NCBI GenBank assembly: GCA_044892525.1
Contig: CM097886.1
Location: forward strand, 35,898,001-35,962,000
Length of the DNA: 64,000 bases
Origin: Schmidtea polychroa
Lineage: Eukaryota
Reading direction: 5' to 3'
Translations under genes and position numbers: made by a program
Notes under the pieces: generated by a model
Databases searched by the model: none
What the model was told of the DNA's origin: nothing
What the model saw: the letters and a program-made list of their open reading frames with translations, nothing else
In this document: positions 3,001 through 48,913 of the stretch, piece after piece
How the letters are laid out: the number at the start of each line of letters is the position of its first letter
How positions within the stretch are numbered: position 1 is the first letter of the stretch

Positions 3001-6000
3001 GGAGAAAAGTCTGAGTTAAAAACCAAAGAACAATTAAAGCAAGAACAAGGGCAAGTTCGATTAGAAAAATTGGATAAAATAGTATGGGATCTAAAGGAAG
3101 CCCAACCAACGATCGAAAGAGGAGAAAAATGGATACGAGAATTGTTAAAAGATATATTAATAATAACAAACCCACAACTTAGACGTTTGTGGCAACGGAA
3201 AGTAGCCAGTACGGAAGCTAGACAATTATGGCACACCATTTCGGGGATAATCCCAAAGTTAATCAAAGAGAAAACGAAAACCACCAAAACGGATTGGGAC
3301 GAAACAAAGAGAGTGATTGAGCAGCTCACGACAAATGCAAATGATGACGAACATCACCTAGTGGTAATCACGTATTTGATGTATAATTTGATGGGACTAG
3401 CTGCGAGGAAAATACCAAATAAACAGTTTGCAAATCATGTGGAAATGACCGTTTTAATCATAGAGAATACTATTGAACCACATATTATTCGTGCAGGAGG
3501 ATGGAAAAGACTAATACAAGCGCCACGGAAAAATGAGCAAGAAAGGTCGATGCAAGTTAGATTGAAAAAACTGTTAAATGAACTAGAATGGGAACTACCG
3601 ATGAAAGATCCCGCAAGCAGAAAAGCATCAATAAATTCGTTAATGATGACTATGATGATATGGATGTTGTGCACAAGTGGAGCAACAGGCTTCACCATCT
3701 ACGATTGTGACAATATGATAATGAGAGATAAATACTCATTGAGAGACATAGAAGAATGCAGACAAGCCTCACCCAACAAATTGGACATCGTGAGAACAAA
3801 AGTTACTTACCATGTATATCAAGAATCAGATTTCATCAGAACGCAAGCAAGGGAATGCGTAGTATCAAAAAAGGTACTCGCATATTACTGTGGACAATAT
3901 TCGTATTCGACTCTTATACTACCCGGTCTGGATAAGGAAATCGTATCAATACAACGAGAGGATTGTAAAGAGCTATTTAGAACCGGAGCGCTAAAAATGC
4001 ATAACGGAGTGACAATTCACGGACAAACTGGAATGATTAAAACCGAAAGTGTTTACGTATCCGGAAAAGTAAAATCATCAGATGGGTCATGTAACGGAGG
4101 GACGTATACGATCCGAGGCGAGGTAATATCGGGAGTTGTAGTGATCGAGTCTTACACGGTCGAATTAAAAGAATACGAAGCGCAATTTGACGCAAATAAT
4201 TACCAAATGAAGACCAACCCAGCGTGTAAAGCTACAGAAAACGTATGCAGGACAGGAGTATCAACTATAATCTATGAAGCTAATACCCAAAAATGCCGAC
4301 TCCAACTGTTAAAAAGTGCTTTGTTCAATGAAGTAAAAGGAGAAATATATGAGAACGAGAACGACGAGGATGGAAACGACAGAGTGAGAATGCGAAATGG
4401 AAAACCAATGCCACCATCTCCCAGAGAAAAGAGACTTTCAACGCAGAAGACACCAACAGCATTAATCACAGACGATCCAGATCTAGGTATGAGGTTTATC
4501 AAAGAGAAAGAAACCACCAAATGTGACAGTATAGTATATAAAACCAATTACGCAGGCATCTATATGTCGAGACAAATAATCGATAGAGCAGTGGGAAAGA
4601 TAGCAACGGAGGACGTAAAACTATACTTATATGCAAATAATAAAATGGATTTTCTATTTCATCGTGGACAAACGACCTTGCAAAAAGTATATTACGATCT
4701 GATACAAAACGATTGTTCATTGAATAAAGAAATATTGAAAACAAAGCTAGCTATTGCGATAACGCACCCAGATAACACGATGCCATCACTCCCATTACCA
4801 GATGGACACTTTGGTAGAATGGTAGGAGAAGTGATGTACACATACCAGTGTACCAAGACGTATGCACGAATGCCAGAAAAATCCATACTACCCGAAAAGA
4901 GATGTGCAAATGAATTAGAAATCCGTTATAAAGGACAAAATCGATTCGTCCAACCAGTCACTAGAATTATGAATCCAGTGGGTTTCTACCCAAATCTCTT
5001 TAACTGTTCTAATGCATACGGACCTTTATATGAAAGGCCCGATGGGAAATGGATGATGTTACCGGGAAAAACCATATCCGAGGAGCCCAAGAAATTTGGA
5101 TTAATAGAACTCGCCACAGAGCTGGATTTCAAACCTATAGACGTGTCAAACGGTGGTATGTATTCCCCGGAAGATCTAGAAACAGCACGACTTAACGTAC
5201 TCTTTCCAGCCAGACGAGAATCCATTTTGTCTAATATGGTAACAATAACTGGGGGCACCAACTATCAATCAGGCCCGAATTACGAGCTGCTATTATCGCC
5301 AGACCATTTTCAACAAGCTACGTCAAACATGATGAAAGCAATGTGGGGAAGATTCTTAGTTTTTGGACAAATGATGGCCGGGATATTAGGGATCATACTC
5401 ATAATTCAGATAGTCAGAGTAATACTAACACAAATGTTAGCTTGTTTCGATATATACAAGCGGGAAAAGAAAGTTAACTGGAAAATGATAGTAGGTTTCT
5501 TACCATTTTTAGCTAAGACCATGGTATTACATGGCCACTCAAAAGACATCCATCGGATAAAGCGATTGATAAAAATATTAACAAAGATTAAAGGAACCGA
5601 CGAAGAAGTAGGCAGACGATTCCGGAAAGTAATGTACGATGAGGCAACAAGACGACAATTGAAAAAGAATAAGCCAAAATTCTTGGACCGATTTAGAAGC
5701 CAATCATCTAACAGCGATAGTGACGACGATGATAACGGGAACGATAAATGTCTTTATCCAAACAGAAACCCAAACGAAAAACCAATGGAAACGGCACCAT
5801 ATTGGGAAAAGGAAAAGACAAACACCTGGATCGCCAATGGAAGCTATATACCACCGGATATCGTGGGACCACAAGCAGCTTTGACCATGACACAAAATAT
5901 GTATCCGCAATTACCGAGCCAACCCGGTATGCATTATATGCCGACACGACGTACCAAAAGTGTAGATCAAGCAGATGACGTAAGAACAATCGCAGCAATG

Positions 6001-9000
6001 AGTCTGCCTGGAGGTCCAGCAGTAACAGTTATGATTCAAATCAATGGTAAAGAAACCAATGCTATGATAGACACCGGAGCTAATGTATCAGCGATAGCGA
6101 TTAATCAAATCCCCAGTAAACACTGGAAAAATATCGAATCAACAACAATTCACATCATAGCATGTAGTAAAGAAACAGTGGACGTGGTCGGAAGATGGTG
6201 GACTACATTGAGATACCAGGACAACGAAATTGAAACGTATTTGGCAGTAATACCAAAACTTAGCGTACCATGCATAATCGGAACGGATTTGATGCCAGAA
6301 TTGTTAAAAGAAGTCGTAATTGACTTAACAACCATGTGTTTAAAAGACAAAACCGGTAGAATATGCAAAATGAATGCAGTCATCAGATGTCCAGAAAAAA
6401 TAATAGTACCAGCAAAATCGCAGATGATTTGTCAGATAAAAGTGGATACGGGTATGGAAGGAGAAGTTATCTTTGAACCAAGCAAGTCATTCGAAAAGCG
6501 ACGAGAATTACCACTCGCAAGAGAAATAATCACAATAAACCAAGAAGGAGTGATACCGCTCAACATCACGAATTTCGAAGAGGAAGACAAAATCATTTAT
6601 GAGAACGAAAAATTGGGAAGATTGACCCCAATGATGGACATAGAATTACCGAAAGTGACCAACGAGATGATCAAAGATGATGAATTATGGACAATAGATA
6701 GTATGTTGTTGACGAATGATGAAAAGAAAAAATTACACCGATTGTTGGTAGAATATAAAGATATATTCGCCATCTCAGACTTAGACTTGGGTACATGCGA
6801 TGTTACCCTACATGCAATACCCCTCATAGATGAAACTCCAATTGCATTAAGACCATACAAGCTAGCAGAAATGCAAAAAGAAATAGCCGAAGCAGAAGTA
6901 CAAAAGATGCTGGACGCAAAAGTAATCGAACCAAGTTGCTCACCTTGGCAATTCCCAGTGGTCATGGTGAAAAAGAAAGATGGCACCCAACGATTCTGTA
7001 TCGATTATCGGAAGCTAAACGCAGTGACCAAGAGAGATACCTATCCATTGCCGGACATCAATGAGATGTTATTGATGTTGCAAGGGGCAGCATATTTTAC
7101 TTCTTTAGATCTAAAAAGTGGATACTGGCAGATTAAAGTCAAAGATGAGGACAAAGAGAAAACAGCTTTCACGTTGGGACGAGATCTATATCAATTCAGG
7201 AAAATGCCATTTGGACTGACCAACGCACCAGCATCATTTCAACGGTGTATGAACTTTGTCACCCATGGAATCAAACAATGTATGGTATATATTGATGATT
7301 TACTAATCTATTCAGCGACATTTGAACAACATCTAGAAGATATCCGAAACGTATTTATTAGATTAAGACAGTGGAAACTCAAACTCAAACCATCAAAATG
7401 CGATTGGGCAAAGGAAAAAGTCACGTTTTTAGGACACATAGTGTCAGCTAAAGGAAAGGAGCCAGATCCAAGAAACATTGAGAAAATAAAACTATGTCCA
7501 GCACCGAAAACTGTCACCCAAGTTCAGGAATTTCTAGGATTATGCGGATACTATCGCAAATTTATCAAAAATTATGCAGGAATTGCAAAACCAATCCAGG
7601 AATTAGTAAAGAAGGATATTTCGTTCATTTGGGAAAAAGAACAACAACAGGCGTTCGAAACGCTGAGAGATAAACTAATCGAAGCACCTATCCTCGTACA
7701 CCCAGATTTTAAGAAGCCATTTCTATTGGCAACGGATGCAAGCGGGTACGCGGCAGGCGCGATTCTGGGACAATTAGACGATGAGGGAAAAGAGAGAGTA
7801 ATCGGGTATTACAGTCGAACATTCAAAAAGCACGAAAAGAACTATTCGGTAACAGAACGAGAAGCATTGGCTATAATACAAGCTATCAAACACTTCCGAT
7901 ATTTACTATGGGGACATGAGATATGCATAACCACGGATCATCAACCATTAGTGTGGTTAGGGCAACATAAAGAAGCGTCCAGTAGACTGATGCGATGGGC
8001 CATGCAATTGCAAGAATACTCCCCATTTATAAAATTCAAAGCGGGAAGAGCAAATGCCAACGCCGATTGTATGTCAAGATTTATTTTCCCAGATTTGGTG
8101 GATTCAGAAATGCAACGCATATGCTTAATAGTAGCGGAAGATTTGGATTTCTGTCAATTACGAAAGGACCAACAAGAGGACGCGGAATTAAAACAAATTA
8201 TCGATTATGTAAAAACCGGAAAGACAGAGGTATATGCGAAAGACCAAAAATTAAAAGAACATATGGATAAACACCGACACCGATATATTATAGAGAAAGA
8301 TTGGTTGCTGATAATGGATGGGGAAAAACGATTAATGTGTATACCGGAAAACCGACGAAAAGAGTTACTAACGCAATATCACGATGGGAGATTGGGAGGA
8401 CATATGTCATCGAAAAAGACGTTAGCAAGAATGAAACAGAAATATTTTTGGCCTACGTTAACTGAAGATGTAACCGAATGGGTAAAAAATTGTCTAACTT
8501 GTGCAACCAGGAAGAATACTGGATCGAAATGGAAAGCACCTTTAACGCCAATGCCAGTACCAATAGAACCAATGACAATGATATCCATGGACGTAGTTGG
8601 TCCACTACCAGAGTCAGATAAAGGAAACGTTTACATTCTAGTGATCACAGACTTTCTTACGAAATTCCCAGAAGCATTCGCGATGCCAGACCAAAAAGCT
8701 AAAACAATCGCAAAAATTTTGGTAGAAGAGATATGTTGCCGATATGGAACACCAAAACAAATCTTAACCGATCAGGGAACTAATTTTATGAGTGAGATAA
8801 TGAGCGAAGTAACAAATTACTTCAAAATAGCAAAACTAAGAACATCTCCATACCACCCTCAAACCAATGGGATGACGGAAAGATTTAATGGAACACTTAT
8901 ACAAATGTTATCAAACTACGTTGACCGTCACCAACGAGATTGGGACGAATATATAAACCTATGTCTTATGGCGTACAGAATGTCGATTCACGCATCAACG

Positions 9001-12000
9001 AAAATGAGCCCATTCAAATTAATGTACGGAAGAGAATGTAACATGCCAATGGACCTGGAATACCAACCACCGATATCGCAGTATATGGAGATCGATGATT
9101 ATGTTACGAAATTCAAGGAAAGAATGCAAGAAATTTGGGAAACTGCGGGATTGAATATCAAGTTCTACCAGGAAAGTTATAAAGATTTACACGATCGAAA
9201 GAAAAACGTGAAGCAACATACGTTCCAAACAGGTGATTGGGTAATGATAGAAACCCCGGAATTAATTCCAGGAACCGCAAAAAAGTTACAACGCAACGGA
9301 AAAGGACCATATGAGATCTTATTCGTAGGCGAAACTAATGTAAGAGTGAAATTGGTAAATAACCCCTTTACCAGACCAATATACGTAAACGTGGCACGAT
9401 GCAAATCAATTCCAAAAACAGCCACTAGTCAACCAGAAGGCCGTACATTAACCACACGTTCGCAAACCTACCGAATGAACATGATGCAACAACTCGCAGA
9501 ACCGATCACTGGACGATTAGGTATCCAACCATCAGAAGCGGAAAAGATTGTAAAAGAGGTAAAAATTAAAATACCTGGATGGGCAAAAGATCGATTAGAT
9601 TTCGAAATATTAGGAGGATTATTGACGATGATCGAGAACTATGCAAATAGAGAAAGGACACACCCATTATTGCGAGTAGTCAAAAGCCAATGGCCAATAT
9701 TATTTACAATAACAGATCATTACGGAGACACACCATTACACAAACTCATGAAAGTAGGTAACAACGAGCAAATACTAGAAACAATAGAAGCATTTCACGA
9801 CTGCAAGCGATCAACAGAACAAACAAACAACCAAGGTTACACACCATTAATGATAGCCGCAAACAGAGGCAAAACAAAAGACATTATAACCGCATTACTC
9901 GATACCGGATCGAAAATAACTACACAAGACCACGAGCGGAAAAACGCTCTACATCATGCTATCGAAGGGAGAAGTACCGAGGCGTTCACGTCATTGATGG
10001 AACTACTATCATATGAGGACAATCGGGAAGTCGGAAACATGTATGATGGATTGTTAACAGCGATCAAAGAAAAACTGACGACAATTACCGAAATATTAAT
10101 TACATGGAGAAATCCAATTCGAAACGATTATATGATCAACGTAAACGAAGCGTTCACGAGAGGAGAGAACACGCTGATGAGAGAAGCTATGAAAGGACAT
10201 CATTTATTCGAAATCCCGAATCAATTACTAGAACGAGGGATAAAATTCACAAATCACAAAGACGAACAGTTAACAAAAAAGCGAATCGACACATTCGAAA
10301 AATCACTATTCCAATTTACTAACCAAGTACGAAATAAATATTGGGAAACGGTAAGTGTGTTATATATGATGGACACGATGAATAACATCCGCGAGAATTA
10401 CATGGATATTATCCAAATACTTACAGCAGAGGAACGAATCAATAATCCAAACGGAAAGAAAATGAAAATAAAGTATGAGAAATCCAGGGAATCAAAGTCA
10501 ACAACGAACCAAACGGTCACAAACAACGTCATCGAAACCAAATCAATGAGTATAGATCAAGAGGCAATAATACGCAAAGCAAAAGAAGTGTTCTTTGAGG
10601 AAATGCTAGAGCTGCCAGACGAAATAATATTGTCCAAAATAATAAAAGCCGTACACACATACGCAAGAGATCAAACCACGGGTTTAGATATCGGGAAAAT
10701 CAAAACCTTCTTGCCTCGAGCATTTACGATGGTAACGAAGGATTCCAGAACACCCCTACAACAAGCAATACTAGCGGCGAAAGAAAATAGAGCAATAACG
10801 ATCGTGAGAATCCTTGGAGAGATGGGCGAGGAAACCAACACGAAAAATGAACAAGGTGAAACCGCCATGATGTATGCAGCTATAACGAAAATACACCCAA
10901 AAACACTCCACATCCTACATCAATCAGGATCGAAACTAGACGAAAAGTCCAATGAAGGAAATTCCACCTTGGACTGGGCAACCATACAGCCAAACTTAGA
11001 AATGATCAGATTTATTTGCAAAAATGCGACAAAAGAAGAAGTTGAAAATATGTGCAAAAACACATCTCAGTTTCAATGGAATACGGTACGGAAAAATCTA
11101 GAAGCAATGAAATTATTATTAACCTGGAGAGTACCACAAAATAATAAATATGCGATAAATGTAAACGAATTCTACGAAAACGGAGAAAATGCGATGGTAA
11201 AGAATACCCTAACCAAGGGGGGGACACCTAAAATAATTTTAATAGTATTAAATAGAGAAGACCTAAAATTCACGCAAAATCAGAACGAGCAACAACGAAT
11301 TGGGAAACATCGTCGTATGCAATTGAGAGAGTTAGTTAAAGAATGGAATAGAAAGAGACATGCTGCAACGGGTAGAAAAGAGTTTGAATTCGAAGCAAAA
11401 TTAGCAAGAAACAGAGTGCTAACAGCATATCGCAGATTATTGAACGATATAAATGTCGAGGACGACATTTTAAACGACAGCGGGGGAGATAAACACGATG
11501 ACAATAACGGAAAAGGCCGAAAGGAGGATAAAGAGAAAAGAGAACAGGAGGAGGGTAAACCGGAAAACAAGGATTCGGATACGAAAAGAGAGGGAAACAG
11601 CCCGGGAACTAAGACCAAAGAGGAGGAAAAATCGAATAATGGAAAACAGAGGGTATGCCTACCTTTCACTAACAAAGAAATAGAGACAAATATGATATTA
11701 ATGATAATTATGCTTACCATGATAGAGTTAGTAACAGCTCAGGGAGGGACGAGAACGATAAAAGAAACCAAAGAAGCGGAGAATCAAGATAGCAAAGAGG
11801 ATGAACTAAAGCAAGAAAAGAAAAAGCAAGCACAAGAGCAGCAGTGGGATTTAAAGGAAGAATGGGACTTAAAGGAAAGGTGCATACTAGGAAGATGCAT
11901 GTCTAGAGCGTATCAGAAACTAGTACTGATAAATGAGGCCACAGAACCAATAACAGAAGTAAGAATACAAGAAGCATACCGAAATCGAGACGGGAAGAGA

Positions 12001-12693
12001 ATAACGAACGTCAAAGGAAAAGAGGTACACCTAGGAAAAGGTGGTGAAGTAGTAATAACGCAGATCCAACCTAGAAAAGAGCACAAAGTCTGTATTTCAA
12101 GATTAGGACCAGGCGAGAGATGCCATCAATATGTGACGCAGCAGCAGCCGCCGAAAGAATACACGGTTTGTATCTGGAGGAATGAATCAAAAAGAGAATG
12201 CCGACGATACCCGGGGAAAAGAGGAAAGAAAAGAAAAAACCACGACGAAAAGAACGAAGGAGGAAAGCACAAGAAAACTGGTGAGGAAGCTCAGGACAAC
12301 TATGTTTCGGAGGAAGAGATGGAAAAAATACAAAAGATGGCAAAGGAGGGTATGAACGAGGAAATAGCAAGAATACGGGAAAGGATGAAAGGAAATGGCA
12401 AAAGAGGAAACGAGAAAAGTACAGAAGCGATATCAACATTAACAAACAAGGAAAAACCAGAGAGTATAAGCGTGAAGCAGATGATGTGGATCAGTGGGAT
12501 AATAATAACAGGGGCATTCCTAATCATAACGGGGGGAACAATAAAAATAATTAAGGATAAACGACATCGCGGAGAACTGGAGATGACTCGAATCAGAAAT
12601 TTCCAACATCGAGTGAAACGACCAAGTGATATCAAACAAGAACAGTGGGTGGAGGCCTGGAACGCTCAGCGCCCTCCAAACTCACGTATATAG
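1..12693 (+). CDS. Giant polyprotein (Ubl x3, Bcl-2-like, Env, PR, RT, RNase H, IN, ankyrin, TM protein); 5' incomplete
   Basis: Frame is open from base 1 (RLQAEEERIKQ...); the track start at 64 is only a TTG. Motifs IDTGA, YIDD, TDASG, HDGRLGGH..C..C, DVVGP, TDQGTNF, TERFN, GPY. Confidence 0.95.
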   Translation, partial: RLQAEEERIKQERNQQRQEQPLRINMMKLVKDMKSQYCYNYGKSPRVVPMTEPEKVKEITTEMKTENSTTILKGNQRTQKIFWKKIKDKIEKEHNKAKTETEDENNKSEEQTSQLNHQMLQELESEETTIFERKKLKRVPRMRNLQINMMKRTKDVASSDEEEDYVSSLGGEILQPSEISEPPKGEIKEEESGNEITSESEDEDIEIKLRKAREEAIKQVAEILPVVVRNQEFIDVIPFRRFVQKVMKLERNEKDLIPNEEKSIIKNYMEKMKQADTTRYVIKIGTSRGLERMWIKNTVTDELFDWIREHLGSSRKKEYLYQYQGEQIKPDMHLVDALIWPGETQILKLHKEKQPANLYDWAKDAKAEYDFNIKLKLEQIKQCTLRRNLDKLIKQIQEQVEDNWDLLITRRAPAMYELMSRLRDTEMLRMSDWRTINLIHKYGRLKETQPQRLEITIWLPNEEKRRIKMSNQSTVDDLVSKINQEITEKVRSESSDGMVDDVVMMYDKIILRTEDDTSLSEMGMWDNHQIIRIVPMDEFRTRDVTYQKEIRDRMKTLYRKSTEIIEIHQQWLKEKELQGKITKLNTRSCRRTPWERVWNAESKEWEIRKGTFVETDIGETESESEEEEEEPPEYEEEARGQTSDDESETDVTSESENEARHIHAMRKKEREYADMDGEEATEAREREETERYKQLGDILAMGAKNQKRQVVALANIILKTSENIHNLRGMAKAIEEYRQYNEWYPEQLEQIIRKWRNQEWAQDTQERYHIQIKYPDKSIEELEVHPTTKIRELKKKLAYETPFHLQLFGKSLDDNADVGITPMRLEETNVLTMAETLGKPLKRKSKIIKPTKGSLSTPSPNKAPSKSNETEEVEEIILEDSDDEPGERSPLLVRWPTGAEMWTNNQPSTSYQQPTKLNIKEIIDNTTETETDEQFQKQREPTKVTPESQTDKIIDEWNEWLRNNDSSLPRTDNERNPNYENTREAGTMMEKRAKGRPKKQGEKSELKTKEQLKQEQGQVRLEKLDKIVWDLKEAQPTIERGEKWIRELLKDILIITNPQLRRLWQRKVASTEARQLWHTISGIIPKLIKEKTKTTKTDWDETKRVIEQLTTNANDDEHHLVVITYLMYNLMGLAARKIPNKQFANHVEMTVLIIENTIEPHIIRAGGWKRLIQAPRKNEQERSMQVRLKKLLNELEWELPMKDPASRKASINSLMMTMMIWMLCTSGATGFTIYDCDNMIMRDKYSLRDIEECRQASPNKLDIVRTKVTYHVYQESDFIRTQARECVVSKKVLAYYCGQYSYSTLILPGLDKEIVSIQREDCKELFRTGALKMHNGVTIHGQTGMIKTESVYVSGKVKSSDGSCNGGTYTIRGEVISGVVVIESYTVELKEYEAQFDANNYQMKTNPACKATENVCRTGVSTIIYEANTQKCRLQLLKSALFNEVKGEIYENENDEDGNDRVRMRNGKPMPPSPREKRLSTQKTPTALITDDPDLGMRFIKEKETTKCDSIVYKTNYAGIYMSRQIIDRAVGKIATEDVKLYLYANNKMDFLFHRGQTTLQKVYYDLIQNDCSLNKEILKTKLAIAITHPDNTMPSLPLPDGHFGRMVGEVMYTYQCTKTYARMPEKSILPEKRCANELEIRYKGQNRFVQPVTRIMNPVGFYPNLFNCSNAYGPLYERPDGKWMMLPGKTISEEPKKFGLIELATELDFKPIDVSNGGMYSPEDLETARLNVLFPARRESILSNMVTITGGTNYQSGPNYELLLSPDHFQQATSNMMKAMWGRFLVFGQMMAGILGIILIIQIVRVILTQMLACFDIYKREKKVNWKMIVGFLPFLAKTMVLHGHSKDIHRIKRLIKILTKIKGTDEEVGRRFRKVMYDEATRRQLKKNKPKFLDRFRSQSSNSDSDDDDNGNDKCLYPNRNPNEKPMETAPYWEKEKTNTWIANGSYIPPDIVGPQAALTMTQNMYPQLPSQPGMHYMPTRRTKSVDQADDVRTIAAMSLPGGPAVTVMIQINGKETNAMIDTGANVSAIAINQIPSKHWKNIESTTIHIIACSKETVDVVGRWWTTLRYQDNEIETYLAVIPKLSVPCIIGTDLMPELLKEVVIDLTTMCLKDKTGRICKMNAVIRCPEKIIVPAKSQMICQIKVDTGMEGEVIFEPSKSFEKRRELPLAREIITINQEGVIPLNITNFEEEDKIIYENEKLGRLTPMMDIELPKVTNEMIKDDELWTIDSMLLTNDEKKKLHRLLVEYKDIFAISDLDLGTCDVTLHAIPLIDETPIALRPYKLAEMQKEIAEAEVQKMLDAKVIEPSCSPWQFPVVMVKKKDGTQRFCIDYRKLNAVTKRDTYPLPDINEMLLMLQGAAYFTSLDLKSGYWQIKVKDEDKEKTAFTLGRDLYQFRKMPFGLTNAPASFQRCMNFVTHGIKQCMVYIDDLLIYSATFEQHLEDIRNVFIRLRQWKLKLKPSKCDWAKEKVTFLGHIVSAKGKEPDPRNIEKIKLCPAPKTVTQVQEFLGLCGYYRKFIKNYAGIAKPIQELVKKDISFIWEKEQQQAFETLRDKLIEAPILVHPDFKKPFLLATDASGYAAGAILGQLDDEGKERVIGYYSRTFKKHEKNYSVTEREALAIIQAIKHFRYLLWGHEICITTDHQPLVWLGQHKEASSRLMRWAMQLQEYSPFIKFKAGRANANADCMSRFIFPDLVDSEMQRICLIVAEDLDFCQLRKDQQEDAELKQIIDYVKTGKTEVYAKDQKLKEHMDKHRHRYIIEKDWLLIMDGEKRLMCIPENRRKELLTQYHDGRLGGHMSSKKTLARMKQKYFWPTLTEDVTEWVKNCLTCATRKNTGSKWKAPLTPMPVPIEPMTMISMDVVGPLPESDKGNVYILVITDFLTKFPEAFAMPDQKAKTIAKILVEEICCRYGTPKQILTDQGTNFMSEIMSEVTNYFKIAKLRTSPYHPQTNGMTERFNGTLIQMLSNYVDRHQRDWDEYINLCLMAYRMSIHASTKMSPFKLMYGRECNMPMDLEYQPPISQYMEIDDYVTKFKERMQEIWETAGLNIKFYQESYKDLHDRKKNVKQHTFQTGDWVMIETPELIPGTAKKLQRNGKGPYEILFVGETNVRVKLVNNPFTRPIYVNVARCKSIPKTATSQPEGRTLTTRSQTYRMNMMQQLAEPITGRLGIQPSEAEKIVKEVKIKIPGWAKDRLDFEILGGLLTMIENYANRERTHPLLRVVKSQWPILFTITDHYGDTPLHKLMKVGNNEQILETIEAFHDCKRSTEQTNNQGYTPLMIAANRGKTKDIITALLDTGSKITTQDHERKNALHHAIEGRSTEAFTSLMELLSYEDNREVGNMYDGLLTAIKEKLTTITEILITWRNPIRNDYMINVNEAFTRGENTLMREAMKGHHLFEIPNQLLERGIKFTNHKDEQLTKKRIDTFEKSLFQFTNQVRNKYWETVSVLYMMDTMNNIRENYMDIIQILTAEERINNPNGKKMKIKYEKSRESKSTTNQTVTNNVIETKSMSIDQEAIIRKAKEVFFEEMLELPDEIILSKIIKAVHTYARDQTTGLDIGKIKTFLPRAFTMVTKDSRTPLQQAILAAKENRAITIVRILGEMGEETNTKNEQGETAMMYAAITKIHPKTLHILHQSGSKLDEKSNEGNSTLDWATIQPNLEMIRFICKNATKEEVENMCKNTSQFQWNTVRKNLEAMKLLLTWRVPQNNKYAINVNEFYENGENAMVKNTLTKGGTPKIILIVLNREDLKFTQNQNEQQRIGKHRRMQLRELVKEWNRKRHAATGRKEFEFEAKLARNRVLTAYRRLLNDINVEDDILNDSGGDKHDDNNGKGRKEDKEKREQEEGKPENKDSDTKREGNSPGTKTKEEEKSNNGKQRVCLPFTNKEIETNMILMIIMLTMIELVTAQGGTRTIKETKEAENQDSKEDELKQEKKKQAQEQQWDLKEEWDLKERCILGRCMSRAYQKLVLINEATEPITEVRIQEAYRNRDGKRITNVKGKEVHLGKGGEVVITQIQPRKEHKVCISRLGPGERCHQYVTQQQPPKEYTVCIWRNESKRECRRYPGKRGKKRKNHDEKNEGGKHKKTGEEAQDNYVSEEEMEKIQKMAKEGMNEEIARIRERMKGNGKRGNEKSTEAISTLTNKEKPESISVKQMMWISGIIITGAFLIITGGTIKIIKDKRHRGELEMTRIRNFQHRVKRPSDIKQEQWVEAWNAQRPPNSRI
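835..1050 (+). other. Ubiquitin/SUMO-like domain 1 in polyprotein
   Basis: YVIKIG...LFDWIREHLG...YQYQGEQIKPDMHLVDALIWPGETQIL resembles the beta-grasp pattern; weakest of the three. Confidence 0.4.
1354..1605 (+). other. Ubiquitin-like domain 2 in polyprotein
   Basis: LEITIWLPNEEKRRIKMSNQSTVDDLVSKI...MMYDKIILRTEDDTSLSEMGM matches the Ubl pattern (TV.DL..KI; L.DD..LS..G). Confidence 0.6.
2299..2499 (+). other. Ubiquitin-like domain 3 in polyprotein
   Basis: YHIQIKYPDKSIEELEVHPTTKIRELKKKL...LQLFGKSLDD aligns by eye with ubiquitin [27 protein letters not shown]...LIFAGKQLED. Confidence 0.7.
3061..3525 (+). other. Bcl-2-like helical domain in polyprotein
   Basis: BH2-like IEPHIIRAGGWKRL preceded by amphipathic helices at BH1 spacing; the canonical NWGR is absent (DEHHLVV). 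The upstream part (NPQLRRLW...EARQLWHTIS) could alternatively be MADF/Myb-like. Confidence 0.6.
3628..5448 (+). other. Internal signal peptide + envelope (class III-like fusion) glycoprotein + TM anchor
   Basis: Hydrophobic LMMTMMIWMLCTSGATG then FTIYDC..YSLRDIEEC..YQE..REC..YCG: Cys spacing of chuvirus-type/retrotransposon-borne glycoproteins. NxS/T sequons (NCS, NYQS-like region); TM FLVFGQMMAGILGIILIIQIV. Confidence 0.8.
6001..6372 (+). other. Retropepsin aspartic protease
   Basis: VMIQINGKETNAMIDTGANVS and CIIGTDLM. Confidence 0.95.
6840..7560 (+). other. Reverse transcriptase (Ty3/gypsy)
   Basis: SPWQFPVVMVKKKDG, RFCIDYRKLN, LDLKSGYWQI, MPFGLTNAPASFQR, VYIDDLLI (YIDD at 7288-7299). Confidence 0.97.
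7700..8085 (+). other. RNase H (Ty3/gypsy)
   Basis: LATDASGYAAGAIL, YSVTEREALAI, TTDHQPL, NANADCMSR. Confidence 0.95.
8125..9480 (+). other. Integrase (HHCC, DDE core, GPY module)
   Basis: HDGRLGGH...CLTC; SMDVVGPLP; LTDQGTNF; GMTERFN; GKGPYEI. Confidence 0.95.
9721..11250 (+). other. Ankyrin repeats, two clusters (~9721-10250 and ~10741-11250)
   Basis: GDTPLHKL, GYTPLMIAA, KNALHHAI, RTPLQQAI, GETAMMYAA, GNSTLDWAT. Confidence 0.85.
11686..12693 (+). other. C-terminal type I membrane protein: signal peptide, FN3-like/Cys module, TM, short tail
   Basis: MILMIIMLTMIELVTA/Q; VVITQIQPRKEHKVCI resembles FN3 strands E-F; TM WISGIIITGAFLIITGG; ends NSRI*. Confidence 0.6.
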
Positions 12694-12853
12694 AAAGGAA
12701 TATGACTGTATATAATTGTAAAAAGTAAGTATATCTTATGTATATAACAGTACTATATCTTTATATAAGCGCGGTATCAATATTATACAATAACGGGAAT
12801 CATAAAATAAAATTAAATTTACATAAGAGCTGAAAAGTGTATATAAATTAGGA

Positions 12854-13213
12854 ATGGATCAAGGAAATAACGAAATGAACCACAATACAGTAACTGAAGA
12901 ATTATGGAAGCAACAATGTGCCGTATTAGCACAATTAGTGTCCAATTTGCAAGAACAAGGACTGACGATGCACAGAAACCTGATCGAGAGTATGAACAGA
13001 GGATTTAGTTATTTGAAGATAATTGAAGACCAGAGGTTAAAAATCGAACAAATGCAAAGAGAGATAGAGAGGATAACCCAATATAGCCGTCGACAGGAAA
13101 TTGAAATAGACAGAATGATGGAGGAAGCAGAACAGACAGAAATAGAAGACTGGTCGGAATGGCTAATGAATAGAGAGGAGAGCGGACACGAAGCCGACTC
13201 TTCCGAACCCTAA
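12854..13213 (+). CDS. Accessory ORF1, 119-aa coiled-coil protein with acidic tail
   Basis: ORF track; same-length homolog at 51825-52184(-). Confidence 0.85.
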   Translation: MDQGNNEMNHNTVTEELWKQQCAVLAQLVSNLQEQGLTMHRNLIESMNRGFSYLKIIEDQRLKIEQMQREIERITQYSRRQEIEIDRMMEEAEQTEIEDWSEWLMNREESGHEADSSEP

Positions 13214-13298
13214 ACCAAACCTAGCTCAAAATGTAAATAATTGTAAATAAAATATCGAACCTGTATCGATAAGAACTATTTGTACATATAATTATAGA

Positions 13299-14687
13299 AT
13301 GGATAAACGACAAAGAGAAGAGTTCAGAGAGATTGTCGAGCAAGTCCGAAAATCTACAACGATCAGAATACACAAACATGTTACGTGCGGAATATGTGAA
13401 AAGTTGTTAAAGGAACCTCACCAAACGCAATGTGGATGCAGAGTATGTAAAGAATGTATCAGTGAAGCAATAAAGAATAGACCACAGAAGTGCCCGGTGT
13501 GTAAAGAGACACTAATATCGAGTTTAGAAGACACTAACGAGGATAAAGCCGCAGTGAAAGACATGTTAAACACCAACCTGGGATGCAAAAATGCCCCATG
13601 CGAATGGAAAGGAGTAATATGGAAGGTAGTACAACATATGGGAGAATGTATGTACCGAATTGGCCAGTGTGAAAGGTGCCATAAAACCATTCGAGCAAGC
13701 GAAGAAAAAGAGCATCAAAGGCAGTGTGAAGAGAGATTGGAAAGATGTGAACACTGTGGAGAAATAGATACGTGGATAAATCTCACCCTCAAACATCACA
13801 ATGTCCAAGAGGAGAGAGTATGTGCAGAGTTCAGTGGGGAATGCCCGAACGGATGCGAAGAAGGGAGAATAATAAAAATAGCCCAACACCTAAAAGAATG
13901 TGAGAAGAAAAGGATGATATGTGTACTAGGTAGATGGGGTTGTCAGAAATTACTACACCGAGGTGAGTTACCACATCATTTAGTAGAAAATGCTTCAACT
14001 CACGCAGAAATGTGGTCGACTGCGTTACAAGAAAGCGAAGAGAAAGTAAAACAAATGGAGATAGAGATAACATCGTTGAAAGTGTTAGTCAAAGAACTAC
14101 TAGAAGAAAGGAAAGCGTTCGAAGAAGCCCGAGCAAACATAAAGATGCAAATAAACCGAACAGAAATCAGTAATAATCAGGCCAAGGAGCTACATCAGAA
14201 AATACGGGAAATAAATCTAAATGAGATAACCCCAACAGCACCCTACATATGGAAAATAACGGGAGTAAAAGAAAGAATACGAAAAGCAAAAACCGGAGAA
14301 GAGACAAGAATAACAAGTCCTACATTCCATTCTTGGAAAAATGGGTACAAAATGAAAATGAAGATATATCCCAACGGGGACGGAACCGGATCAGATACGC
14401 ACTTTTCGATTTTCTTTCTGTTATGTAAAGGAGAATACGACGAAATATTAGAATGGCCGTTCCAGGCAAAAATCGATATTACCCTGATGAACAACCAAAG
14501 TATACATGAGCAAAGCTTCAAAACAACGGGGAATCAAATAGCTTACCAGAGGCCCCTCAACGAAGAAGGATCAGCAACAGGAGCACCCACGTTCATCTCA
14601 CAACAAAGAGTAGAAGATATGGCGAGAAATGATACCATATATATCAAGATGACCGTGAGGAAAGAGGAGAAGGGTAGAACGGAATAA
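13299..14687 (+). CDS. TRAF: TRAF-family protein (RING, TRAF zinc fingers, coiled coil, MATH), 462 aa
   Basis: CGIC..LLKEP.QT.CG.RVC..CI..CPVC; repeated C..C...H...C fingers; YIWKI, SPTF...GYKMKMKIYPNGDG...HFSIFFLLCKGEYD.ILEWPF; homolog at 50346-51734(-). Confidence 0.95.
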   Translation: MDKRQREEFREIVEQVRKSTTIRIHKHVTCGICEKLLKEPHQTQCGCRVCKECISEAIKNRPQKCPVCKETLISSLEDTNEDKAAVKDMLNTNLGCKNAPCEWKGVIWKVVQHMGECMYRIGQCERCHKTIRASEEKEHQRQCEERLERCEHCGEIDTWINLTLKHHNVQEERVCAEFSGECPNGCEEGRIIKIAQHLKECEKKRMICVLGRWGCQKLLHRGELPHHLVENASTHAEMWSTALQESEEKVKQMEIEITSLKVLVKELLEERKAFEEARANIKMQINRTEISNNQAKELHQKIREINLNEITPTAPYIWKITGVKERIRKAKTGEETRITSPTFHSWKNGYKMKMKIYPNGDGTGSDTHFSIFFLLCKGEYDEILEWPFQAKIDITLMNNQSIHEQSFKTTGNQIAYQRPLNEEGSATGAPTFISQQRVEDMARNDTIYIKMTVRKEEKGRTE

Positions 14688-14879
14688 CCAATCGAATAAT
14701 GTTGTATATAATAATCTGTATATATCGGTGTATATAACCAATAAAATATTATATAATAATAGTATGAAAACCCTAAATACGAAAACCCAAAAATGATGCG
14801 AAAATTCCCCAAGAAACAGTAAATAATGAATAAATTCCTTTTTCATAATAAAAGATTAATCGATGTCTATGATTTAGAG

Positions 14880-15935
14880 ATGACAAAAGAGAAAATAACC
14901 GAAACTGCGATAGACCCAACCAATGTCAACAAGACACAAATTCTCCGAGAACATAACAAAAAATGGAACAAAGTAATGTTCCAACTAACTAATCTCACCC
15001 GAAATCACATCGAAGAAACTAGAGAAGATGAGAATAGTCAATACCAATGGTTAATACACAACTTAAGAGCGGAAGCAGAAGCATGCAAAAGAGCATCAAA
15101 ATGGGCGTCACTAGAAAATACCCGCCAAGAAGCACACAGCCACTACTTAAAGCAGCTAGTGCAGGAAGCGAGAAAGAGACTTACCGATGAGAACACCAAG
15201 CGCGAAGCGGAAAAACAAATAGAAGACAGGAAAATGATGCACTTAGTGGCAGAAGCGAGGAAATGGAAAAGACAAAACAGAGAAATGAAAAAAGAGATGA
15301 AAGAATTGCCCATGAGACTCGGATATGAAAGCGAACAAGGTAAATGGGAGGAGAATTTAATAATAAAGGAAGAATTGAAAAGGTTGAGAAAGGTCGCCGC
15401 CCGAAGCCAAACCTGGCAAACAAAGGCTATGGAGTTTGAGCGACATTTGGCAATGAAGTGCGACATAAGAGAGCACGAGAATGCCGCAATGGAAGAGATG
15501 ATAACCCAACAAGCGGGACGGGTTGTGGAATTAGTAAATCAGGTAGAAGAGATGAAAAGAGACCTTAATGGATTACAAGGATCGCTGGAACAAAGAAACA
15601 TGGTCCTAGCGGGAAAAAACAGAAAATTAGAAAACGAAAGGAAAATGTACACCGAAAATATTAAAAACTTAGAAATAGAAATTGAAAAATGGAAGGGCGA
15701 CGAGAAAATCAAGGCCCTAGACAAACAGATAGAGGCGCAAGATGAAGAGACAAGGTATCTCACCTATCTGCTCGACGAGGAATTGAATATCACTCGAGCT
15801 CTAAGAGACGAAGTTAGTGAATTGAGAGCTCAAATTCCCCAATATTACCTACCATACGACCCTATTGCGATACAGTTACATTCCGCGGTCGATAGTGATG
15901 AAGGTTATGTAGGCCAGGAGGAAACCTTCGTATGA
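14880..15935 (+). CDS. Accessory ORF3, long coiled-coil protein (~351 aa)
   Basis: ORF track 14826-15935; start moved to ATG 14880 because homology to copy B (49088-50125) begins there. Confidence 0.85.
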   Translation: MTKEKITETAIDPTNVNKTQILREHNKKWNKVMFQLTNLTRNHIEETREDENSQYQWLIHNLRAEAEACKRASKWASLENTRQEAHSHYLKQLVQEARKRLTDENTKREAEKQIEDRKMMHLVAEARKWKRQNREMKKEMKELPMRLGYESEQGKWEENLIIKEELKRLRKVAARSQTWQTKAMEFERHLAMKCDIREHENAAMEEMITQQAGRVVELVNQVEEMKRDLNGLQGSLEQRNMVLAGKNRKLENERKMYTENIKNLEIEIEKWKGDEKIKALDKQIEAQDEETRYLTYLLDEELNITRALRDEVSELRAQIPQYYLPYDPIAIQLHSAVDSDEGYVGQEETFV

Positions 15936-16103
15936 GGGTGGATGAAAAAATGAAAAACTAAAAACCGGGACGTATATCCCAAACAAAAAAATTAAAGTAT
16001 TGTAAAAGTATTCAGGGGACTGTAACCCAAACTATTAAATTTTATATCAATGTATACGTATAAGTCGCACTATAGCGCACCATTAACTGTACATATTATA
16101 GAT

Positions 16104-16802
16104 ATGAAAATCGAGGAAATGATAGAAATTATGAGCGACGTAGAAGAGGGAGAGATTGAGGCAGAAACAACAGAAACCCAAACGCTAAAGGCCGAGTTAC
16201 GGGAAGAGAAATACGAAAACGGGAGATTAATAAACAAATACCTGGAGGACCGGAAAATGATAAAGGTGTTAAAGAAAGAGTGCGAAGCGTTGGGGGAAAT
16301 AAAAAGAGAAACGGAAGAGGAAAATGAATGGCTACACGAACAAAGGAAGCGAGGGAAAAACTGGGAAAAGATAGCGGAAGAACTATGGAAAGAGAGGGCA
16401 AGCTTCAAAGCAAAGGAGGTAATCCAAGACTACTGGAAAACTGAGGCGAAGGAGCGCCAAACAGCTATAAATAAATTAAAACGACAACTAGAAGAAAACC
16501 AACGGGAAAGTAAAGAAATGAGGAAGTGGGTCCGCAAATATAGAGAAATAGAAAGAAAACATCAACAACAAAATTACCTGCAAGAAAACGAACAAGATCT
16601 CCTACAAATCGAGCTAAAAAGAAACCTTGAAAAGAAAAGGGAAGAAATTAGACGCTTGGAAAAAGAAATTAGACATCTAAAGAGAGAAGCCCGTGAAAAA
16701 GACCGACAATTGGAAATGCTGCCCGAGTTAAGACACAGGGTAATTAAAGCAGAGTCCACCTTGATGAGAATCGGCGAAAATAATCCAAATCAGAACCATT
16801 AA
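16104..16802 (+). CDS. Accessory ORF4, coiled-coil protein (~232 aa)
   Basis: ORF track 16050-16802; ATG 16104 matches the copy B start (48212-48913). Confidence 0.85.
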   Translation: MKIEEMIEIMSDVEEGEIEAETTETQTLKAELREEKYENGRLINKYLEDRKMIKVLKKECEALGEIKRETEEENEWLHEQRKRGKNWEKIAEELWKERASFKAKEVIQDYWKTEAKERQTAINKLKRQLEENQRESKEMRKWVRKYREIERKHQQQNYLQENEQDLLQIELKRNLEKKREEIRRLEKEIRHLKREAREKDRQLEMLPELRHRVIKAESTLMRIGENNPNQNH

Positions 16803-16857
16803 ATTAAGGGTCATTAAAACCAATTGTAAATAAACATAATGAATGTATAATAGTATC

Positions 16858-17511
16858 ATGCGAGGCGAGATGATGATAACAATGATGGTATTGATGATTC
16901 TGATGGAGAGCAAACAAATAGACGCCCAACCGAAAATCGTACGAGATTACCGAAATCAAAATCAAGAACCTAAACAAGAATCCAGTCAATGCACATACCC
17001 GATGACCGTAAAAACCCATATCATCCAAACCATTCAATCAACCCGATCACACATCAACAACATCCAAACAATGTGTAAAAAGAATCCCATTTGTAAAATG
17101 ATAAACAAACAAATCCTCGAACAAATTCAACAATTCGACCAGTTGGAACAACAAATGCAACAAGAGAATTTTGGAAATCTGGTAGAAAAGCCAAAAATAC
17201 CTCCCGAAATCAATGACACCCATTATCTCATATATGCGGTGATCGCAGAAACCCTCCTCCTATGTCTACCAATATTCATGAAAATTTACGAAGTTCGAAA
17301 TAGATGTAGAATCTCGACATCAATAAGAGTAACCTCGAACCAAAATCCTCAAGAAGTGCCCCTGACAAATCTTAACCCAACCCCATTCCGACCTCGAACC
17401 CCGAGTAATCAACCAATCCAGCCGAAATCTAATAGTCAGACCTATCTCAACATCAATACCCAAACCAACCAACAGCCGCCAGCAGAAGCATCAATGGTTA
17501 ACAGTTCATAA
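16858..17511 (+). CDS. Accessory ORF5, type I membrane protein (signal, coiled coil, TM, P/Q/N/T-rich tail)
   Basis: MMITMMVLMILMES signal; TM YLIYAVIAETLLLCLPIFM; diverged homolog 47521-48156(-) shares I.ETL..C. Confidence 0.8.
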   Translation: MRGEMMITMMVLMILMESKQIDAQPKIVRDYRNQNQEPKQESSQCTYPMTVKTHIIQTIQSTRSHINNIQTMCKKNPICKMINKQILEQIQQFDQLEQQMQQENFGNLVEKPKIPPEINDTHYLIYAVIAETLLLCLPIFMKIYEVRNRCRISTSIRVTSNQNPQEVPLTNLNPTPFRPRTPSNQPIQPKSNSQTYLNINTQTNQQPPAEASMVNSS

Positions 17512-17696: not shown

Positions 17697-17734
17697 AATT
17701 GCGGGACGCAATTTTGATGGGTCCCCGAGTGATT
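17697..17734 (+). promoter_or_regulatory. Conserved pre-LTR hairpin and non-canonical PPT region
   Basis: AATTGCG-GGA-CGCAATT then GGGTCCCCGAGTGATT directly before TGTTGG; counterpart at 47291-47328(-). Confidence 0.7.
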
Positions 17735-18068
17735 TGTTGGGCTGAGTCGAGAATTTAATCGTTGAAAAATAAGAAAGTAGGGAAGTAGAACATTAAGAAA
17801 AATAAAAATAAAATAAATAAAATCAGAAATAAAATAGAATAGGATATAAGGAAAATAATAATTAAGACATAAGAATTAAAACAAAAAATAAAATTAAGAA
17901 AAGATTAAAATAGAACAAGTTGACAAATAAATAAAGAGGAATTCAAGAAATAATAAGGAAATTAAGGAAATAAATAGAAAAACATATTAAAAATAAAGAA
18001 AATAAGGAAAAAACAACCTAAAAACAAGAAAATTATATTAAATTAATAGAAATAAGCGGTACTCAACT

Positions 18069-22808: not shown

Positions 22809-22874
22809 AATTGTTTTTTATGCTCTGTTTTTATACAAAAATTACAATACTTATATATATTTTCAACTCTCAGA

Positions 22875-47520: not shown

Positions 47521-48156
47521 TCACATGATCTCAAGGTTCGGAATGTTATTACTGTCTTGGTTGGTTGAGTTCTGGGTCGGATGGCTGGTCGAAGTTGTTA
47601 TCGTGGGGAGCTGGATTGTAACAGGCATTTGGTCAGGGGATAGATTTTGTTGCATTTGGTCGGGTGGGTTTGGTTGTTGAAAATGTACTGCTCGTTTATG
47701 TTTATTTTTCGATCGTAGGTTCTTTCTTTCGTGTTTTTCGGATAGTGACTGGTTTCTTCTCCATGTTCGATGAATATCATACGCTTTCCAGATGACTAGT
47801 GCGCAGATGATAAGGGTTTCACTGATGGTAGTATAGAGTAAGACTTGGCTTTCTTTTACTTCCTTCTTCATGATGATTTCCTTCAAGGATTGTTGGGTGG
47901 TTTGTTCTTGTAAGAGAATTTCGAGCTGTTCGATTTTTTGGGTTTGTAGGTGGAGTTGCATTTGAAGTTTTTTCCAGACGACTTTGTTCCAGCATTGTTT
48001 CGGGATGTTGTTGGAGAGCTTTCTCTCGCTTTTTAGTTTGGTTAAAGGGTTTTGCTGTTTCTCGGGATTTTCCCAGAATGTTGGGATTGGCTGCCACATG
48101 GGTCTCCCGTTTATCGCTATCATCATTATTGTCACCAAGGTTGCTCCGAACCACAT
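47521..48156 (-). CDS. Accessory ORF5, type I membrane protein (211 aa)
   Basis: Signal MWFGATLVTIMMIAING; TM VLLYTTISETLIICALVIW; P/Q/T-rich tail. Confidence 0.8.
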   Translation of the reverse strand: MWFGATLVTIMMIAINGRPMWQPIPTFWENPEKQQNPLTKLKSERKLSNNIPKQCWNKVVWKKLQMQLHLQTQKIEQLEILLQEQTTQQSLKEIIMKKEVKESQVLLYTTISETLIICALVIWKAYDIHRTWRRNQSLSEKHERKNLRSKNKHKRAVHFQQPNPPDQMQQNLSPDQMPVTIQLPTITTSTSHPTQNSTNQDSNNIPNLEIM

Positions 48157-48211: not shown

Positions 48212-48913
48212 TTATTGCCGGGTTTTCTTTTTACGGGTTTTCTCGGATGTTCTCATCACTCTCGTTTCTGCTTTTATTACTCGTTTTCTCAATTCGGGTA
48301 GTACTTTTAATTGTTTGTCTCTTTCGTCTAACTGTTGCCTTAGGGTTATTATTTTTTCTTTTAGTGCTTTTATTTCTTGTGTTGCTCTTTCGAGGTTTCT
48401 ATGGTTCATTATCTGTAGGAAATCATTTTCCCTTTCCCCGTCTTCTTCGTTGTCTATTTCCTGGTATTTGTTGTTCATTCGTCTCATTATCTCACATTCT
48501 TTCTGGTTTTGGTGTAGTTGGAGTTGTAACTCTTTCAGGCTTTCTTGGTGTTTCCGTGCCTCGGTTTTCCAATAGTCACTAATCACTTCGTCGGCCTTTC
48601 GACTGGCCCTCTCCTGCCATAATTCTTCCGCGATCTTTTCCCAATTTCTCCCTCGCTTTCTTTGCTCGTGAAGCCATTCATTTTCTTCCTCTACCTCTTT
48701 CTTTACTCCTTCTAACAAGATATATTCTCTTTTCAATACTTTAATCATTTTTCGATTATCTCTCCACCTTTCAACTAATCTTTCGTTTTCCTGTCTCTCT
48801 TCTTGTAATTCTTCCTTGATAGTTTTCTTCCTCTCCACTTCATCAACTTCAATTTCTCCCTCTTCTAACTCGATTATAGATGTTATGCTGGGTTGTCCGT
48901 TTTCGGTGTTCAT
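48212..48913 (-). CDS. Accessory ORF4, coiled-coil protein (233 aa)
   Basis: EENEWLHEQRKRG.NWEKIAEELW shared with A. Confidence 0.85.
   Translation of the reverse strand: MNTENGQPSITSIIELEEGEIEVDEVERKKTIKEELQEERQENERLVERWRDNRKMIKVLKREYILLEGVKKEVEEENEWLHEQRKRGRNWEKIAEELWQERASRKADEVISDYWKTEARKHQESLKELQLQLHQNQKECEIMRRMNNKYQEIDNEEDGERENDFLQIMNHRNLERATQEIKALKEKIITLRQQLDERDKQLKVLPELRKRVIKAETRVMRTSEKTRKKKTRQ

Follow-up and report, generated by a model that had tools for sequence, protein, structure and literature searches.

Introduction

Giant retroelements of the Burro type are the closest described relatives of the system considered here, a TRAF gene carried by a retroelement in 64,000 nucleotides of Schmidtea polychroa (assembly GCA_044892525.1, contig CM097886.1, positions 35,898,001 to 35,962,000, forward strand), a stretch that we call the window. 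The passages on Burro in Arkhipova and Yushenova 2019 (PMC6431247) describe Burro/GYPSM1 of Schmidtea mediterranea as longer than 30 kb and numbering thousands of copies (with reference to Jurka 2007 and Grohme et al. 2018). Its first open reading frame (ORF), ORF1, of 4,873 amino acids, is listed there with gag, MATH_TRAF_C, ubiquitin-like and BCL2-like modules, and env, and the in-frame, mononegavirus-related env is followed by protease (PR), dUTPase, reverse transcriptase (RT), RNase H (RH), integrase (IN), BIR, and ankyrin repeats. The same passages place the MATH_TRAF_C of a Burro-like element from Dugesia (Girardia) tigrina in an upstream accessory ORF, and they propose that Burro interferes with apoptosis and ubiquitination in the host. 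Transcripts of BURRO1 occur in differentiated planarian tissues, where the PIWI protein SMEDWI-2 represses the element (PMC8532177). Planarian transcriptomes contained 99–121 MATH-domain transcripts, and the TRAF family was called "greatly expanded"; the passages on this expansion in Swapna et al. 2018 (PMC6109357) draw no transposon link.

The occurrence of TRAF-type domains in Burro-type elements is already published, and the phenomenon is not new. A preliminary description of the window, made from the sequence alone, had reported a complete intronless TRAF gene in two copies of a retroelement, captured from the host and under selection for the element. The results below bear out the complete gene, its host-type character, and, as far as the window allows, its carriage by the element, but the novelty was overstated, as the published passages already report MATH_TRAF_C in Burro/GYPSM1 and in the Girardia element (PMC6431247). 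The gain here is one of detail (full-length architecture, position, selection, and phylogenetic placement) and not a new principle.

A complete TRAF gene in both element copies

Two inverted element copies in the window each encode a complete TRAF of 462 amino acids, composed of a C4C4 RING, five zinc fingers, a trimer-type coiled coil, and a TRAF2/3-like TRAF-C domain (Table 1). The two ORFs align end to end without gaps at 69% amino acid and 73% nucleotide identity, and we call the gene intronless because no break occurs in its reading frame, which is colinear with full-length TRAFs. From local base composition, we estimate a probability of ~1e-13 that 462 codons would stay open by chance. 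Pfam recognized the TRAF-C/MATH domain (MATH_2, 5.5e-28; TRAF/meprin MATH, TRAF-mep_MATH, 1.1e-27) and the RING (zf-C3HC4, 6e-5). Sequence matches in the PDB were to the TRAF domains of TRAF1/2/3 (~1e-28) and the RING-zinc-finger regions of TRAF6/TRAF5 (1e-15), and alignments to TRAF3 covered the coiled coil. An AlphaFold2 model, for which the input was a 40-sequence alignment, had a mean predicted local distance difference test score (pLDDT) of 92, with a continuous helix over residues 232–304 (pLDDT >90) and a beta-sandwich over residues 316–455. When the model was compared with the PDB by Foldseek, the top 50 matches were all TRAF domains (TRAF1-6), with target-normalized TM-scores of up to 0.85.

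Both copies kept the eight RING ligands (C30, C33, C45, C47, C50, C53, C65, and C68) and the Cys/His residues of the five zinc-finger modules, which have TRAF-like spacing and align to TRAF6 ZnF1-3 and to conserved columns of 40 TRAFs. All eight invariant columns of the 40-TRAF alignment were kept, as were 37 of 38 nearly invariant ones, the lone departure being a conservative I/L swap. The corresponding profile, run against the six-frame translation of the window, found only two TRAF homologs, in the same place in each copy, and no MATH domain within the 4,230 in-window codons of the copy 1 polyprotein.

The element TRAF has the domain order and zinc-finger number of cellular TRAF2, TRAF3, and TRAF5. 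Its TRAF-C is 32%–36% identical to that of TRAF2/3 (target-normalized TM-score up to 0.84), and its RING-zinc-finger region aligns to the structures of TRAF6 and TRAF5. It differs from cellular TRAFs in having Cys instead of His as the fourth RING ligand, in being intronless and encoded by a mobile element, and in its best full-length identity of 36%.

Among predicted viral protein structures in BFVD, the top matches were TRAF-like proteins of iridoviruses and giant viruses. One viral TRAF homolog, ORF111L of ISKNV, a fish iridovirus, is a TRADD-binding protein that triggers apoptosis by way of caspase-8 (PMC3352826). The viral homologs (ISKNV ORF111L, megalocytiviruses, Klosneuvirinae-type) resemble the present case in that host-derived TRAF-like genes are kept in virus genomes, but their carriers are large DNA viruses, whereas here a reverse-transcribing element carries a full-length TRAF; the iridovirus proteins among the matches listed are also shorter (206–368 versus 462 amino acids) and only 16%–23% identical. 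Acutely transforming retroviruses carry transduced signaling genes such as v-rel, and transduced oncogenes usually replace viral genes, leaving the virus defective. In the window, by contrast, two lineages that diverged long ago each combine the cargo with intact pol and env frames. The likeness to v-rel viruses and to foamy-like fish endogenous retroviruses, which have accessory ORFs (PMC6431247), is in the placement of extra ORFs or a host-derived signaling gene 3' of pol.

The element and the place of TRAF within it

The two copies are inverted homologous blocks (positions 1073-16501 on the plus strand and 63995-48504 on the minus strand) that are 79% identical across 15.5 kb and have unrelated outer flanks. 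All comparisons between them used the sequences without alteration. Within the window, every ORF of both copies is unbroken, and only the window ends truncate the giant polyproteins. In the copy 1 polyprotein, Pfam found the Ty3/gypsy (Metaviridae-like) order PR-RT-RNase H-IN in a single frame, preceded in that frame by a mononegavirus-type fusion glycoprotein, with a weak ubiquitin-like signal upstream of the glycoprotein; the 5' part, which lies outside the window, is presumably gag. Following the polyprotein on the same strand, both copies have five accessory ORFs of 119, 462 (TRAF), 369/345, 250/233, and 222/211 amino acids. TRAF is the second, about 600 nt downstream of the polyprotein.

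By its sequence architecture, wherever this can be compared, the element is a Burro-like giant Ty3/gypsy endogenous retrovirus-like element and a slightly different member of that group, an assignment made from published descriptions. Shared features are the giant polyprotein, the mononegavirus-type fusion glycoprotein in frame upstream of PR-RT-RH-IN, post-integrase ankyrin repeats, accessory ORFs, MATH_TRAF_C, an A/T-rich host genome, and, with Burro1, the weak ubiquitin-like signal upstream of env. The position of TRAF is different. In the published passages, MATH_TRAF_C lies inside ORF1 before env in Burro1 and in an upstream ORF in the Girardia element, whereas in the window a full-length TRAF forms a gene of its own downstream of the polyprotein.

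TRAF also shares the composition of the element. Its A content is 41% and its AT skew is 0.39–0.41, compared with 0.36 in the polyprotein; the other accessory ORFs match, and the spacer DNA between the copies and the hAT transposase gene within it have an AT skew of about 0–0.09. We place TRAF inside the element because it occupies the same slot in two colinear copies, has element-like composition, and is flanked by conserved spacers, so that its status as element cargo, as opposed to a neighboring host gene, is well supported.

Purifying selection on TRAF and the rest of the element

The pattern of substitution indicates that TRAF has been kept under purifying selection since the two element lineages split. 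The proportion of differing sites between the copies (Nei-Gojobori counts) was 0.159 for non-synonymous (pN) and 0.742 for synonymous (pS) sites, an excess of synonymous change with a Fisher p of 1e-74, and pN/pS was at most 0.25 in each TRAF domain taken separately. Fourfold degenerate sites differed at 0.56, approaching the value of about 0.63 expected for unrelated sequences of the same composition. The preliminary description had counted four synonymous and no non-synonymous differences in the first 11 codons, which our recount matched exactly. Its more general remark on many synonymous changes holds for the 148 codons that differ only synonymously, but a further 142 codons differ in amino acid, as the 69% identity of the proteins reflects. 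The selection that it proposed is borne out by the difference between pN and pS, and for these two copies the data argue strongly against neutral evolution.

Constraint extended across the element. The polyprotein had a pN of 0.059 and a pS of 0.68, with RT, RNase H, and IN at 95%–97% amino acid identity, and pN/pS was 0.02–0.12 across protease, RT, RNase H, integrase, and glycoprotein. The TRAF protein changed about 2.7 times as much as the polyprotein average (p 3e-28), at a rate close to that of the ankyrin region and typical of an accessory and possibly host-facing protein. Element copies resident in a genome decay neutrally. The whole element shows a purifying pattern, and we therefore interpret the lineages of the two copies as having diverged while replicating, and TRAF as having been aboard before the lineages split.

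Relatives and origin of the element TRAF

Searches of protein collections returned only distant relatives. A word-indexed search with the TRAF protein gave one match (36% identical), and an exhaustive search of 1.84 billion representatives gave 6,213 matches, none above 42% identity; copies of the element TRAF are therefore absent from those collections. The best full-length match (P0004, 469 amino acids) was 36% identical. No contig encoding TRAF or P0011 (discussed below) was found by exact-sequence look-up, and scanning metagenome and viral contig collections with the two-copy alignment gave no matches.

The named proteins among the top-ranking matches were triclad (Dendrocoelum lacteum TRAF-2, -4, and -5, and Dugesia japonica TRAF-2-like A), and triclad TRAFs ranked above those of fish, coral, sponge, and mollusc. 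In a neighbor-joining tree, the element TRAFs paired in 200 of 200 bootstraps and were sister to P0004 in 194 of 200, within a clade holding all triclad sequences. The fourth RING ligand is Cys in this planarian-type clade, as in the element TRAFs, and His in vertebrate, coral, and mollusc TRAFs. Tree placement and the shared C4C4 RING thus support a probable flatworm origin of the element TRAFs. Most likely, a flatworm TRAF mRNA was retro-copied, which would explain the missing introns, and was taken into the element. We note that these data do not polarize the direction of transfer, since the nearest relative is only 36% identical and the tree places clade members without their genomic context.

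Some database sequences hint at further links between TRAFs and mobile elements. One member of the planarian-type clade that is present only in UniParc (P0011; 511 amino acids, 48% identical to D. japonica TRAF-2-like A) has no starting methionine. It begins with 38 residues that match the integrase GPY-like module of both copies (39%–42% identity, E 3e-6 to 8e-6), and a complete TRAF follows in the same frame. Of 171 proteins retrieved, none but P0011 matched the polyprotein, and a search with its integrase-like N-terminus returned P0011 alone. We take this sequence as a hint only, since it may be either a chimeric gene model or a further TRAF linked to a retroelement. Three shorter relatives (P0019, P0023, and P0001) lack an intact TRAF-C and are 52%–70% identical to one another, which likewise hints at, and no more than hints at, a decaying multi-copy family. 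The genomic contexts of two database TRAFs (L001 and L002) had nothing in common with the element beyond TRAF. As a separate observation, L001 (positions 1-12458 of an ENA metagenome scaffold) is a dense, mostly same-strand array of intronless genes that include a 463-amino acid TRAF (P0060), a dynamin-like GTPase, and a BIR-RING (IAP-like) protein, and its appearance is that of a piece of a large DNA virus, or of another mobile element, with TRAF and IAP.

Spacers and candidate expression signals

The accessory ORFs are separated by spacers of 40–190 nt. Those at 12694-12853, 13214-13298, and 15936-16049 were 71%–81% identical between copies, compared with 44%–50% at fourfold degenerate sites. 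As the spacers are more conserved than these sites, they appear to contain conserved signals of one transcription unit. A GTAAGT donor-like site shortly after the polyprotein stop is the only GT[AG]AGT in 12600-17900 that is conserved in both copies. In both copies, TTATAG acceptor-like sites lie 1–3 nt before the start codons of TRAF and ORF4; the other accessory ORFs have sites ending in AG ahead of them. Recurrent motifs in the spacers include TGTATATA, TTATAG ahead of start codons, and AATAAA-like sites that follow stops. We also observed that synonymous divergence was lowered in the last 124 codons of the polyprotein (pS 0.45).

TRAF is probably made from a processed sub-genomic RNA. The layout would fit either cis-splicing, as in complex retroviruses, or resolution of a polycistron by spliced-leader (SL) trans-splicing, and both SL trans-splicing and operons are documented in flatworms, where spacers typically measure about 100 nt (PMC8629364). 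The splicing or trans-splicing interpretation of the accessory cluster is weak on its own, and our confidence in it is low.

Possible function and alternative explanations

Overall, the locus is best explained, in our judgment and with moderate confidence, as a maintained element TRAF that engages host signaling, that is, as Burro-like cargo of flatworm origin. TRAF protein would be produced in element-expressing cells and would trimerize via its coiled coil. The TRAF-C groove and the apparently intact RING could then engage host TRAF-dependent receptor and ubiquitin signaling (NF-kB/JNK/p38 and cell-death control), which may favor the element, for example by blunting innate responses or the death of expressing cells. 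The intact look of the RING somewhat favors an active adaptor over a TRAF1-like decoy. Such a role would parallel the apoptosis and ubiquitin modules of other Burro elements and the TRAF homologs of large DNA viruses.

Several points weigh against this explanation. Trimerization, receptor-peptide binding, E3 activity, and expression are all deduced from sequence, and in A/T-rich DNA motifs that contain AG or resemble AATAAA turn up often. The Pfam zf-TRAF profile fell short of E<0.01 on the TRAF protein, and the zinc fingers are called from PDB alignments, Cys/His spacing, and the model. The location of TRAF inside the element is argued from colinearity and composition, as both 5' ends, needed to delimit the long terminal repeats (LTRs), primer-binding site, and polypurine tract, lie beyond the window. 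The nearest database TRAF is only 36% identical, and transfer in the reverse direction, with host TRAFs derived from element genes, is conceivable. Finally, unlike in Burro, no BIR, BCL2-like, or dUTPase module was seen in the polyprotein by Pfam, even at a permissive E-value; part of ORF1 lies outside the window, and the published passages report these modules from CDD/HHpred, compared with Pfam here.

The main rival to a host-signaling role is that TRAF serves the element's own particle biology, for instance as a trimeric adaptor on the cytoplasmic tail of the fusion glycoprotein or as an E3 ligase for Gag/integrase trafficking or budding. The transcript unit of TRAF also encodes a trimer-type fusion glycoprotein, and the element has a small membrane-protein-like ORF5; in PDB complexes, TRAF trimers act as adaptors on the tails of trimeric receptors, and the coiled-coil proteins of accessory ORFs 2–4 could be TRAF partners. 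However, the viral TRAF homologs that have been studied act on host death and signaling adaptors (PMC3352826), and the published passages on Burro point to host apoptosis and ubiquitination (PMC6431247), so we regard a particle role as unlikely, if worth keeping in mind. It is quite improbable, in turn, that the copies or their TRAF genes were domesticated and are selected for the host as extra immune adaptors. TRAF is intact in both copies, and many expressed MATH/TRAF transcripts are reported in the passages on planarian transcriptomes (PMC6109357), as domestication would predict, but purifying selection is equal or stronger on PR, RT, RNase H, IN, and the glycoprotein, and selection over the whole element is the signature of replicating lineages and not of a single co-opted gene. 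The copies are also different lineages inserted 25–30 kb apart, not orthologous loci.

Two further explanations were rejected. An ordinary host TRAF gene adjoining a retroelement, with the whole block duplicated in place by an inverted segmental duplication, would account for two inverted copies within one 64-kb window. A duplication of this kind should have decayed neutrally, yet every ORF is still open across more than 15 kb, and divergence is near saturation at synonymous sites and low at non-synonymous ones. TRAF also equals the element in its strand-biased A-richness, the DNA between the copies is asymmetric beyond one further ORF pair, and published Burro-type elements carry the same domain (PMC6431247). 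On open ORFs, divergence pattern, composition, and asymmetry, we consider this duplication very improbable. Retroelements can pick up host sequences by template switching, and TRAF might be a recently transduced cDNA without function that is decaying as a neutral passenger. The selection data make this scarcely credible: pN/pS is far below 1, the length is the same and there are no indels despite near-saturating synonymous divergence, and all zinc ligands and family-invariant residues are kept.

Relevance to the planarian TRAF expansion

A mobile element that keeps a complete innate-immune adaptor under selection clearly exemplifies a genomic parasite equipped with host signaling hardware, the same strategy as that of large DNA viruses. 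To us, the most interesting point is the element-borne share of the planarian TRAF expansion. Element-borne TRAFs, which are multi-copy and under the control of PIWI and not of host promoters, may contaminate gene-family counts derived from transcriptomes as well as lists of "immune TRAFs", and host and element TRAFs need to be sorted before the reported expansion is interpreted. A broader scenario, which we put forward as possible but doubtful, is that a substantial part of the planarian TRAF/MATH expansion consists of Burro-like cargo and its derivatives, with the radiation (the all-cysteine RING clade) driven by shuttling between host and element and with element-borne copies expressed from a spliced or SL-trans-spliced, operon-like cluster.

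Table 1. Coordinates of the TRAF genes, polyprotein domains, accessory ORFs, and other features of the two element copies, numbered from the first base of the window
Feature	Position	Strand	Description
Copy 1 TRAF gene	13299..14687	+	462 amino acids; ATG start, one terminal stop
Copy 1 RING	aa 30-68, nt 13386-13502	+	zf-C3HC4, Cys ligands
Copy 1 TRAF zinc-finger modules (five)	aa 96-235, nt 13584-14003	+	Cys/His spacing, PDB alignments, model
Copy 1 coiled coil	aa 232-304, nt 13992-14210	+	73 residues; AlphaFold2 helix, TRAF3 alignment
Copy 1 TRAF-C/MATH	aa 316-455, nt 14244-14663	+	Pfam, PDB, AlphaFold2 beta-sandwich
Copy 2 TRAF gene	50346..51734	-	462 amino acids, same architecture; ATG start, one terminal stop
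Copy 2 RING	51531-51647	-	Same architecture as copy 1
Copy 2 TRAF-C	50370-50789	-	Same architecture as copy 1
Copy 1 giant polyprotein ORF	1..12693	+	4,230 codons, no internal stops; open from first base of window
Copy 1 class-III-type viral fusion glycoprotein (env-like)	3637..5460	+	Pfam Monjiviricetes_fusion 1e-66; N-terminal part 8.6e-27
Copy 1 retroviral aspartyl protease	6028..6303	+	RVP 1.2e-9
Copy 1 reverse transcriptase and RNase H	6967..8019	+	RVT_1 1.3e-35, RT_RNaseH 5.9e-39
Copy 1 integrase (zinc-binding domain, catalytic core, and C-terminal module)	8341..9414	+	Integrase_H2C2 3.7e-20, rve 2.1e-12
Copy 1 integrase C-terminal GPY-like module	9301-9414	+	Weak SH3_Tf2-1; match to P0011 N-terminus
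Copy 1 ankyrin repeats	9763..11013	+	Same ORF, past integrase; Ank_2 1.3e-17
Copy 2 giant polyprotein ORF	52351..64000	-	3,882 codons in window, no internal stops; open to window end
GTAAGT donor-like site	12725..12730	+	32 nt past polyprotein stop; copy 2 at 52313-52318 (-)
Copy 1 small accessory ORF	12854..13213	+	119 amino acids, helical/coiled-coil-like; intact in both copies, 64% amino acid identity
Copy 2 small accessory ORF	51825..52184	-	119 amino acids; homolog of copy 1 ORF
Copy 1 accessory ORF3	14826..15935	+	369 amino acids, coiled-coil; conserved start probably ATG at 14880
Copy 2 accessory ORF3	49088..50125	-	345 amino acids; 78% identical to copy 1
Copy 1 accessory ORF4	16050..16802	+	250 amino acids, coiled-coil-like; homolog in copy 2
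Copy 2 accessory ORF4	48212..48913	-	233 amino acids; 54% identical to copy 1
Copy 1 accessory ORF5	16843..17511	+	222 amino acids; hydrophobic signal-like N-terminus, one transmembrane-like segment
Copy 2 accessory ORF5	47521..48156	-	211 amino acids; 27% identical over 98 amino acids
Conserved non-coding block	17697..17756	+	60 nt, short palindrome inside; copy 2 at 47269-47328; 82% conserved
Further homologous ORF pair	20133-21077 (+), 43656-44420 (-)	element strand	2.6-3.1 kb past ORF5

Other accessory genes and the DNA between the copies

Among the remaining accessory genes, ORF5 was by far the most diverged between copies. The ORF3 proteins end in the same residues in both copies (...GQEETFV), which resemble a class-I PDZ-binding C-terminus; by way of comparison, PDZ-binding-like C-termini occur on several viral regulatory proteins.

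Beyond ORF5, the conserved non-coding block with the palindrome is the last stretch common to both copies at the DNA level, and a long A-rich tract of several hundred bases follows. The block and the tract may lie near a polypurine tract or the start of an LTR. The proteins of the further ORF pair were 37% identical over 251 amino acids (53% in the N-terminal part) and had no Pfam match, and the pair does not have the A-rich composition of the element (AT skew 0.13, GC 0.48). It could be a repeat in its own right, or a gene that lies within an LTR or a long 3' region; the presence of a shared ORF so far beyond ORF5 suggests a long element 3' region.

The DNA between the copies (from about 22 to 43 kb in the window) is 70% A+T without strand bias, and its symmetry is limited to this one ORF pair. 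An Rfam search of the window returned no RNA families. A separate BED-finger ORF (22791-23282, plus strand) adjoins a 17-nt tandem repeat (22735-22808) between the copies, and the A/T-rich inter-copy DNA also holds an intact-looking hAT transposase gene with a BED finger and a hAT dimerization domain (31565-33364, plus strand).

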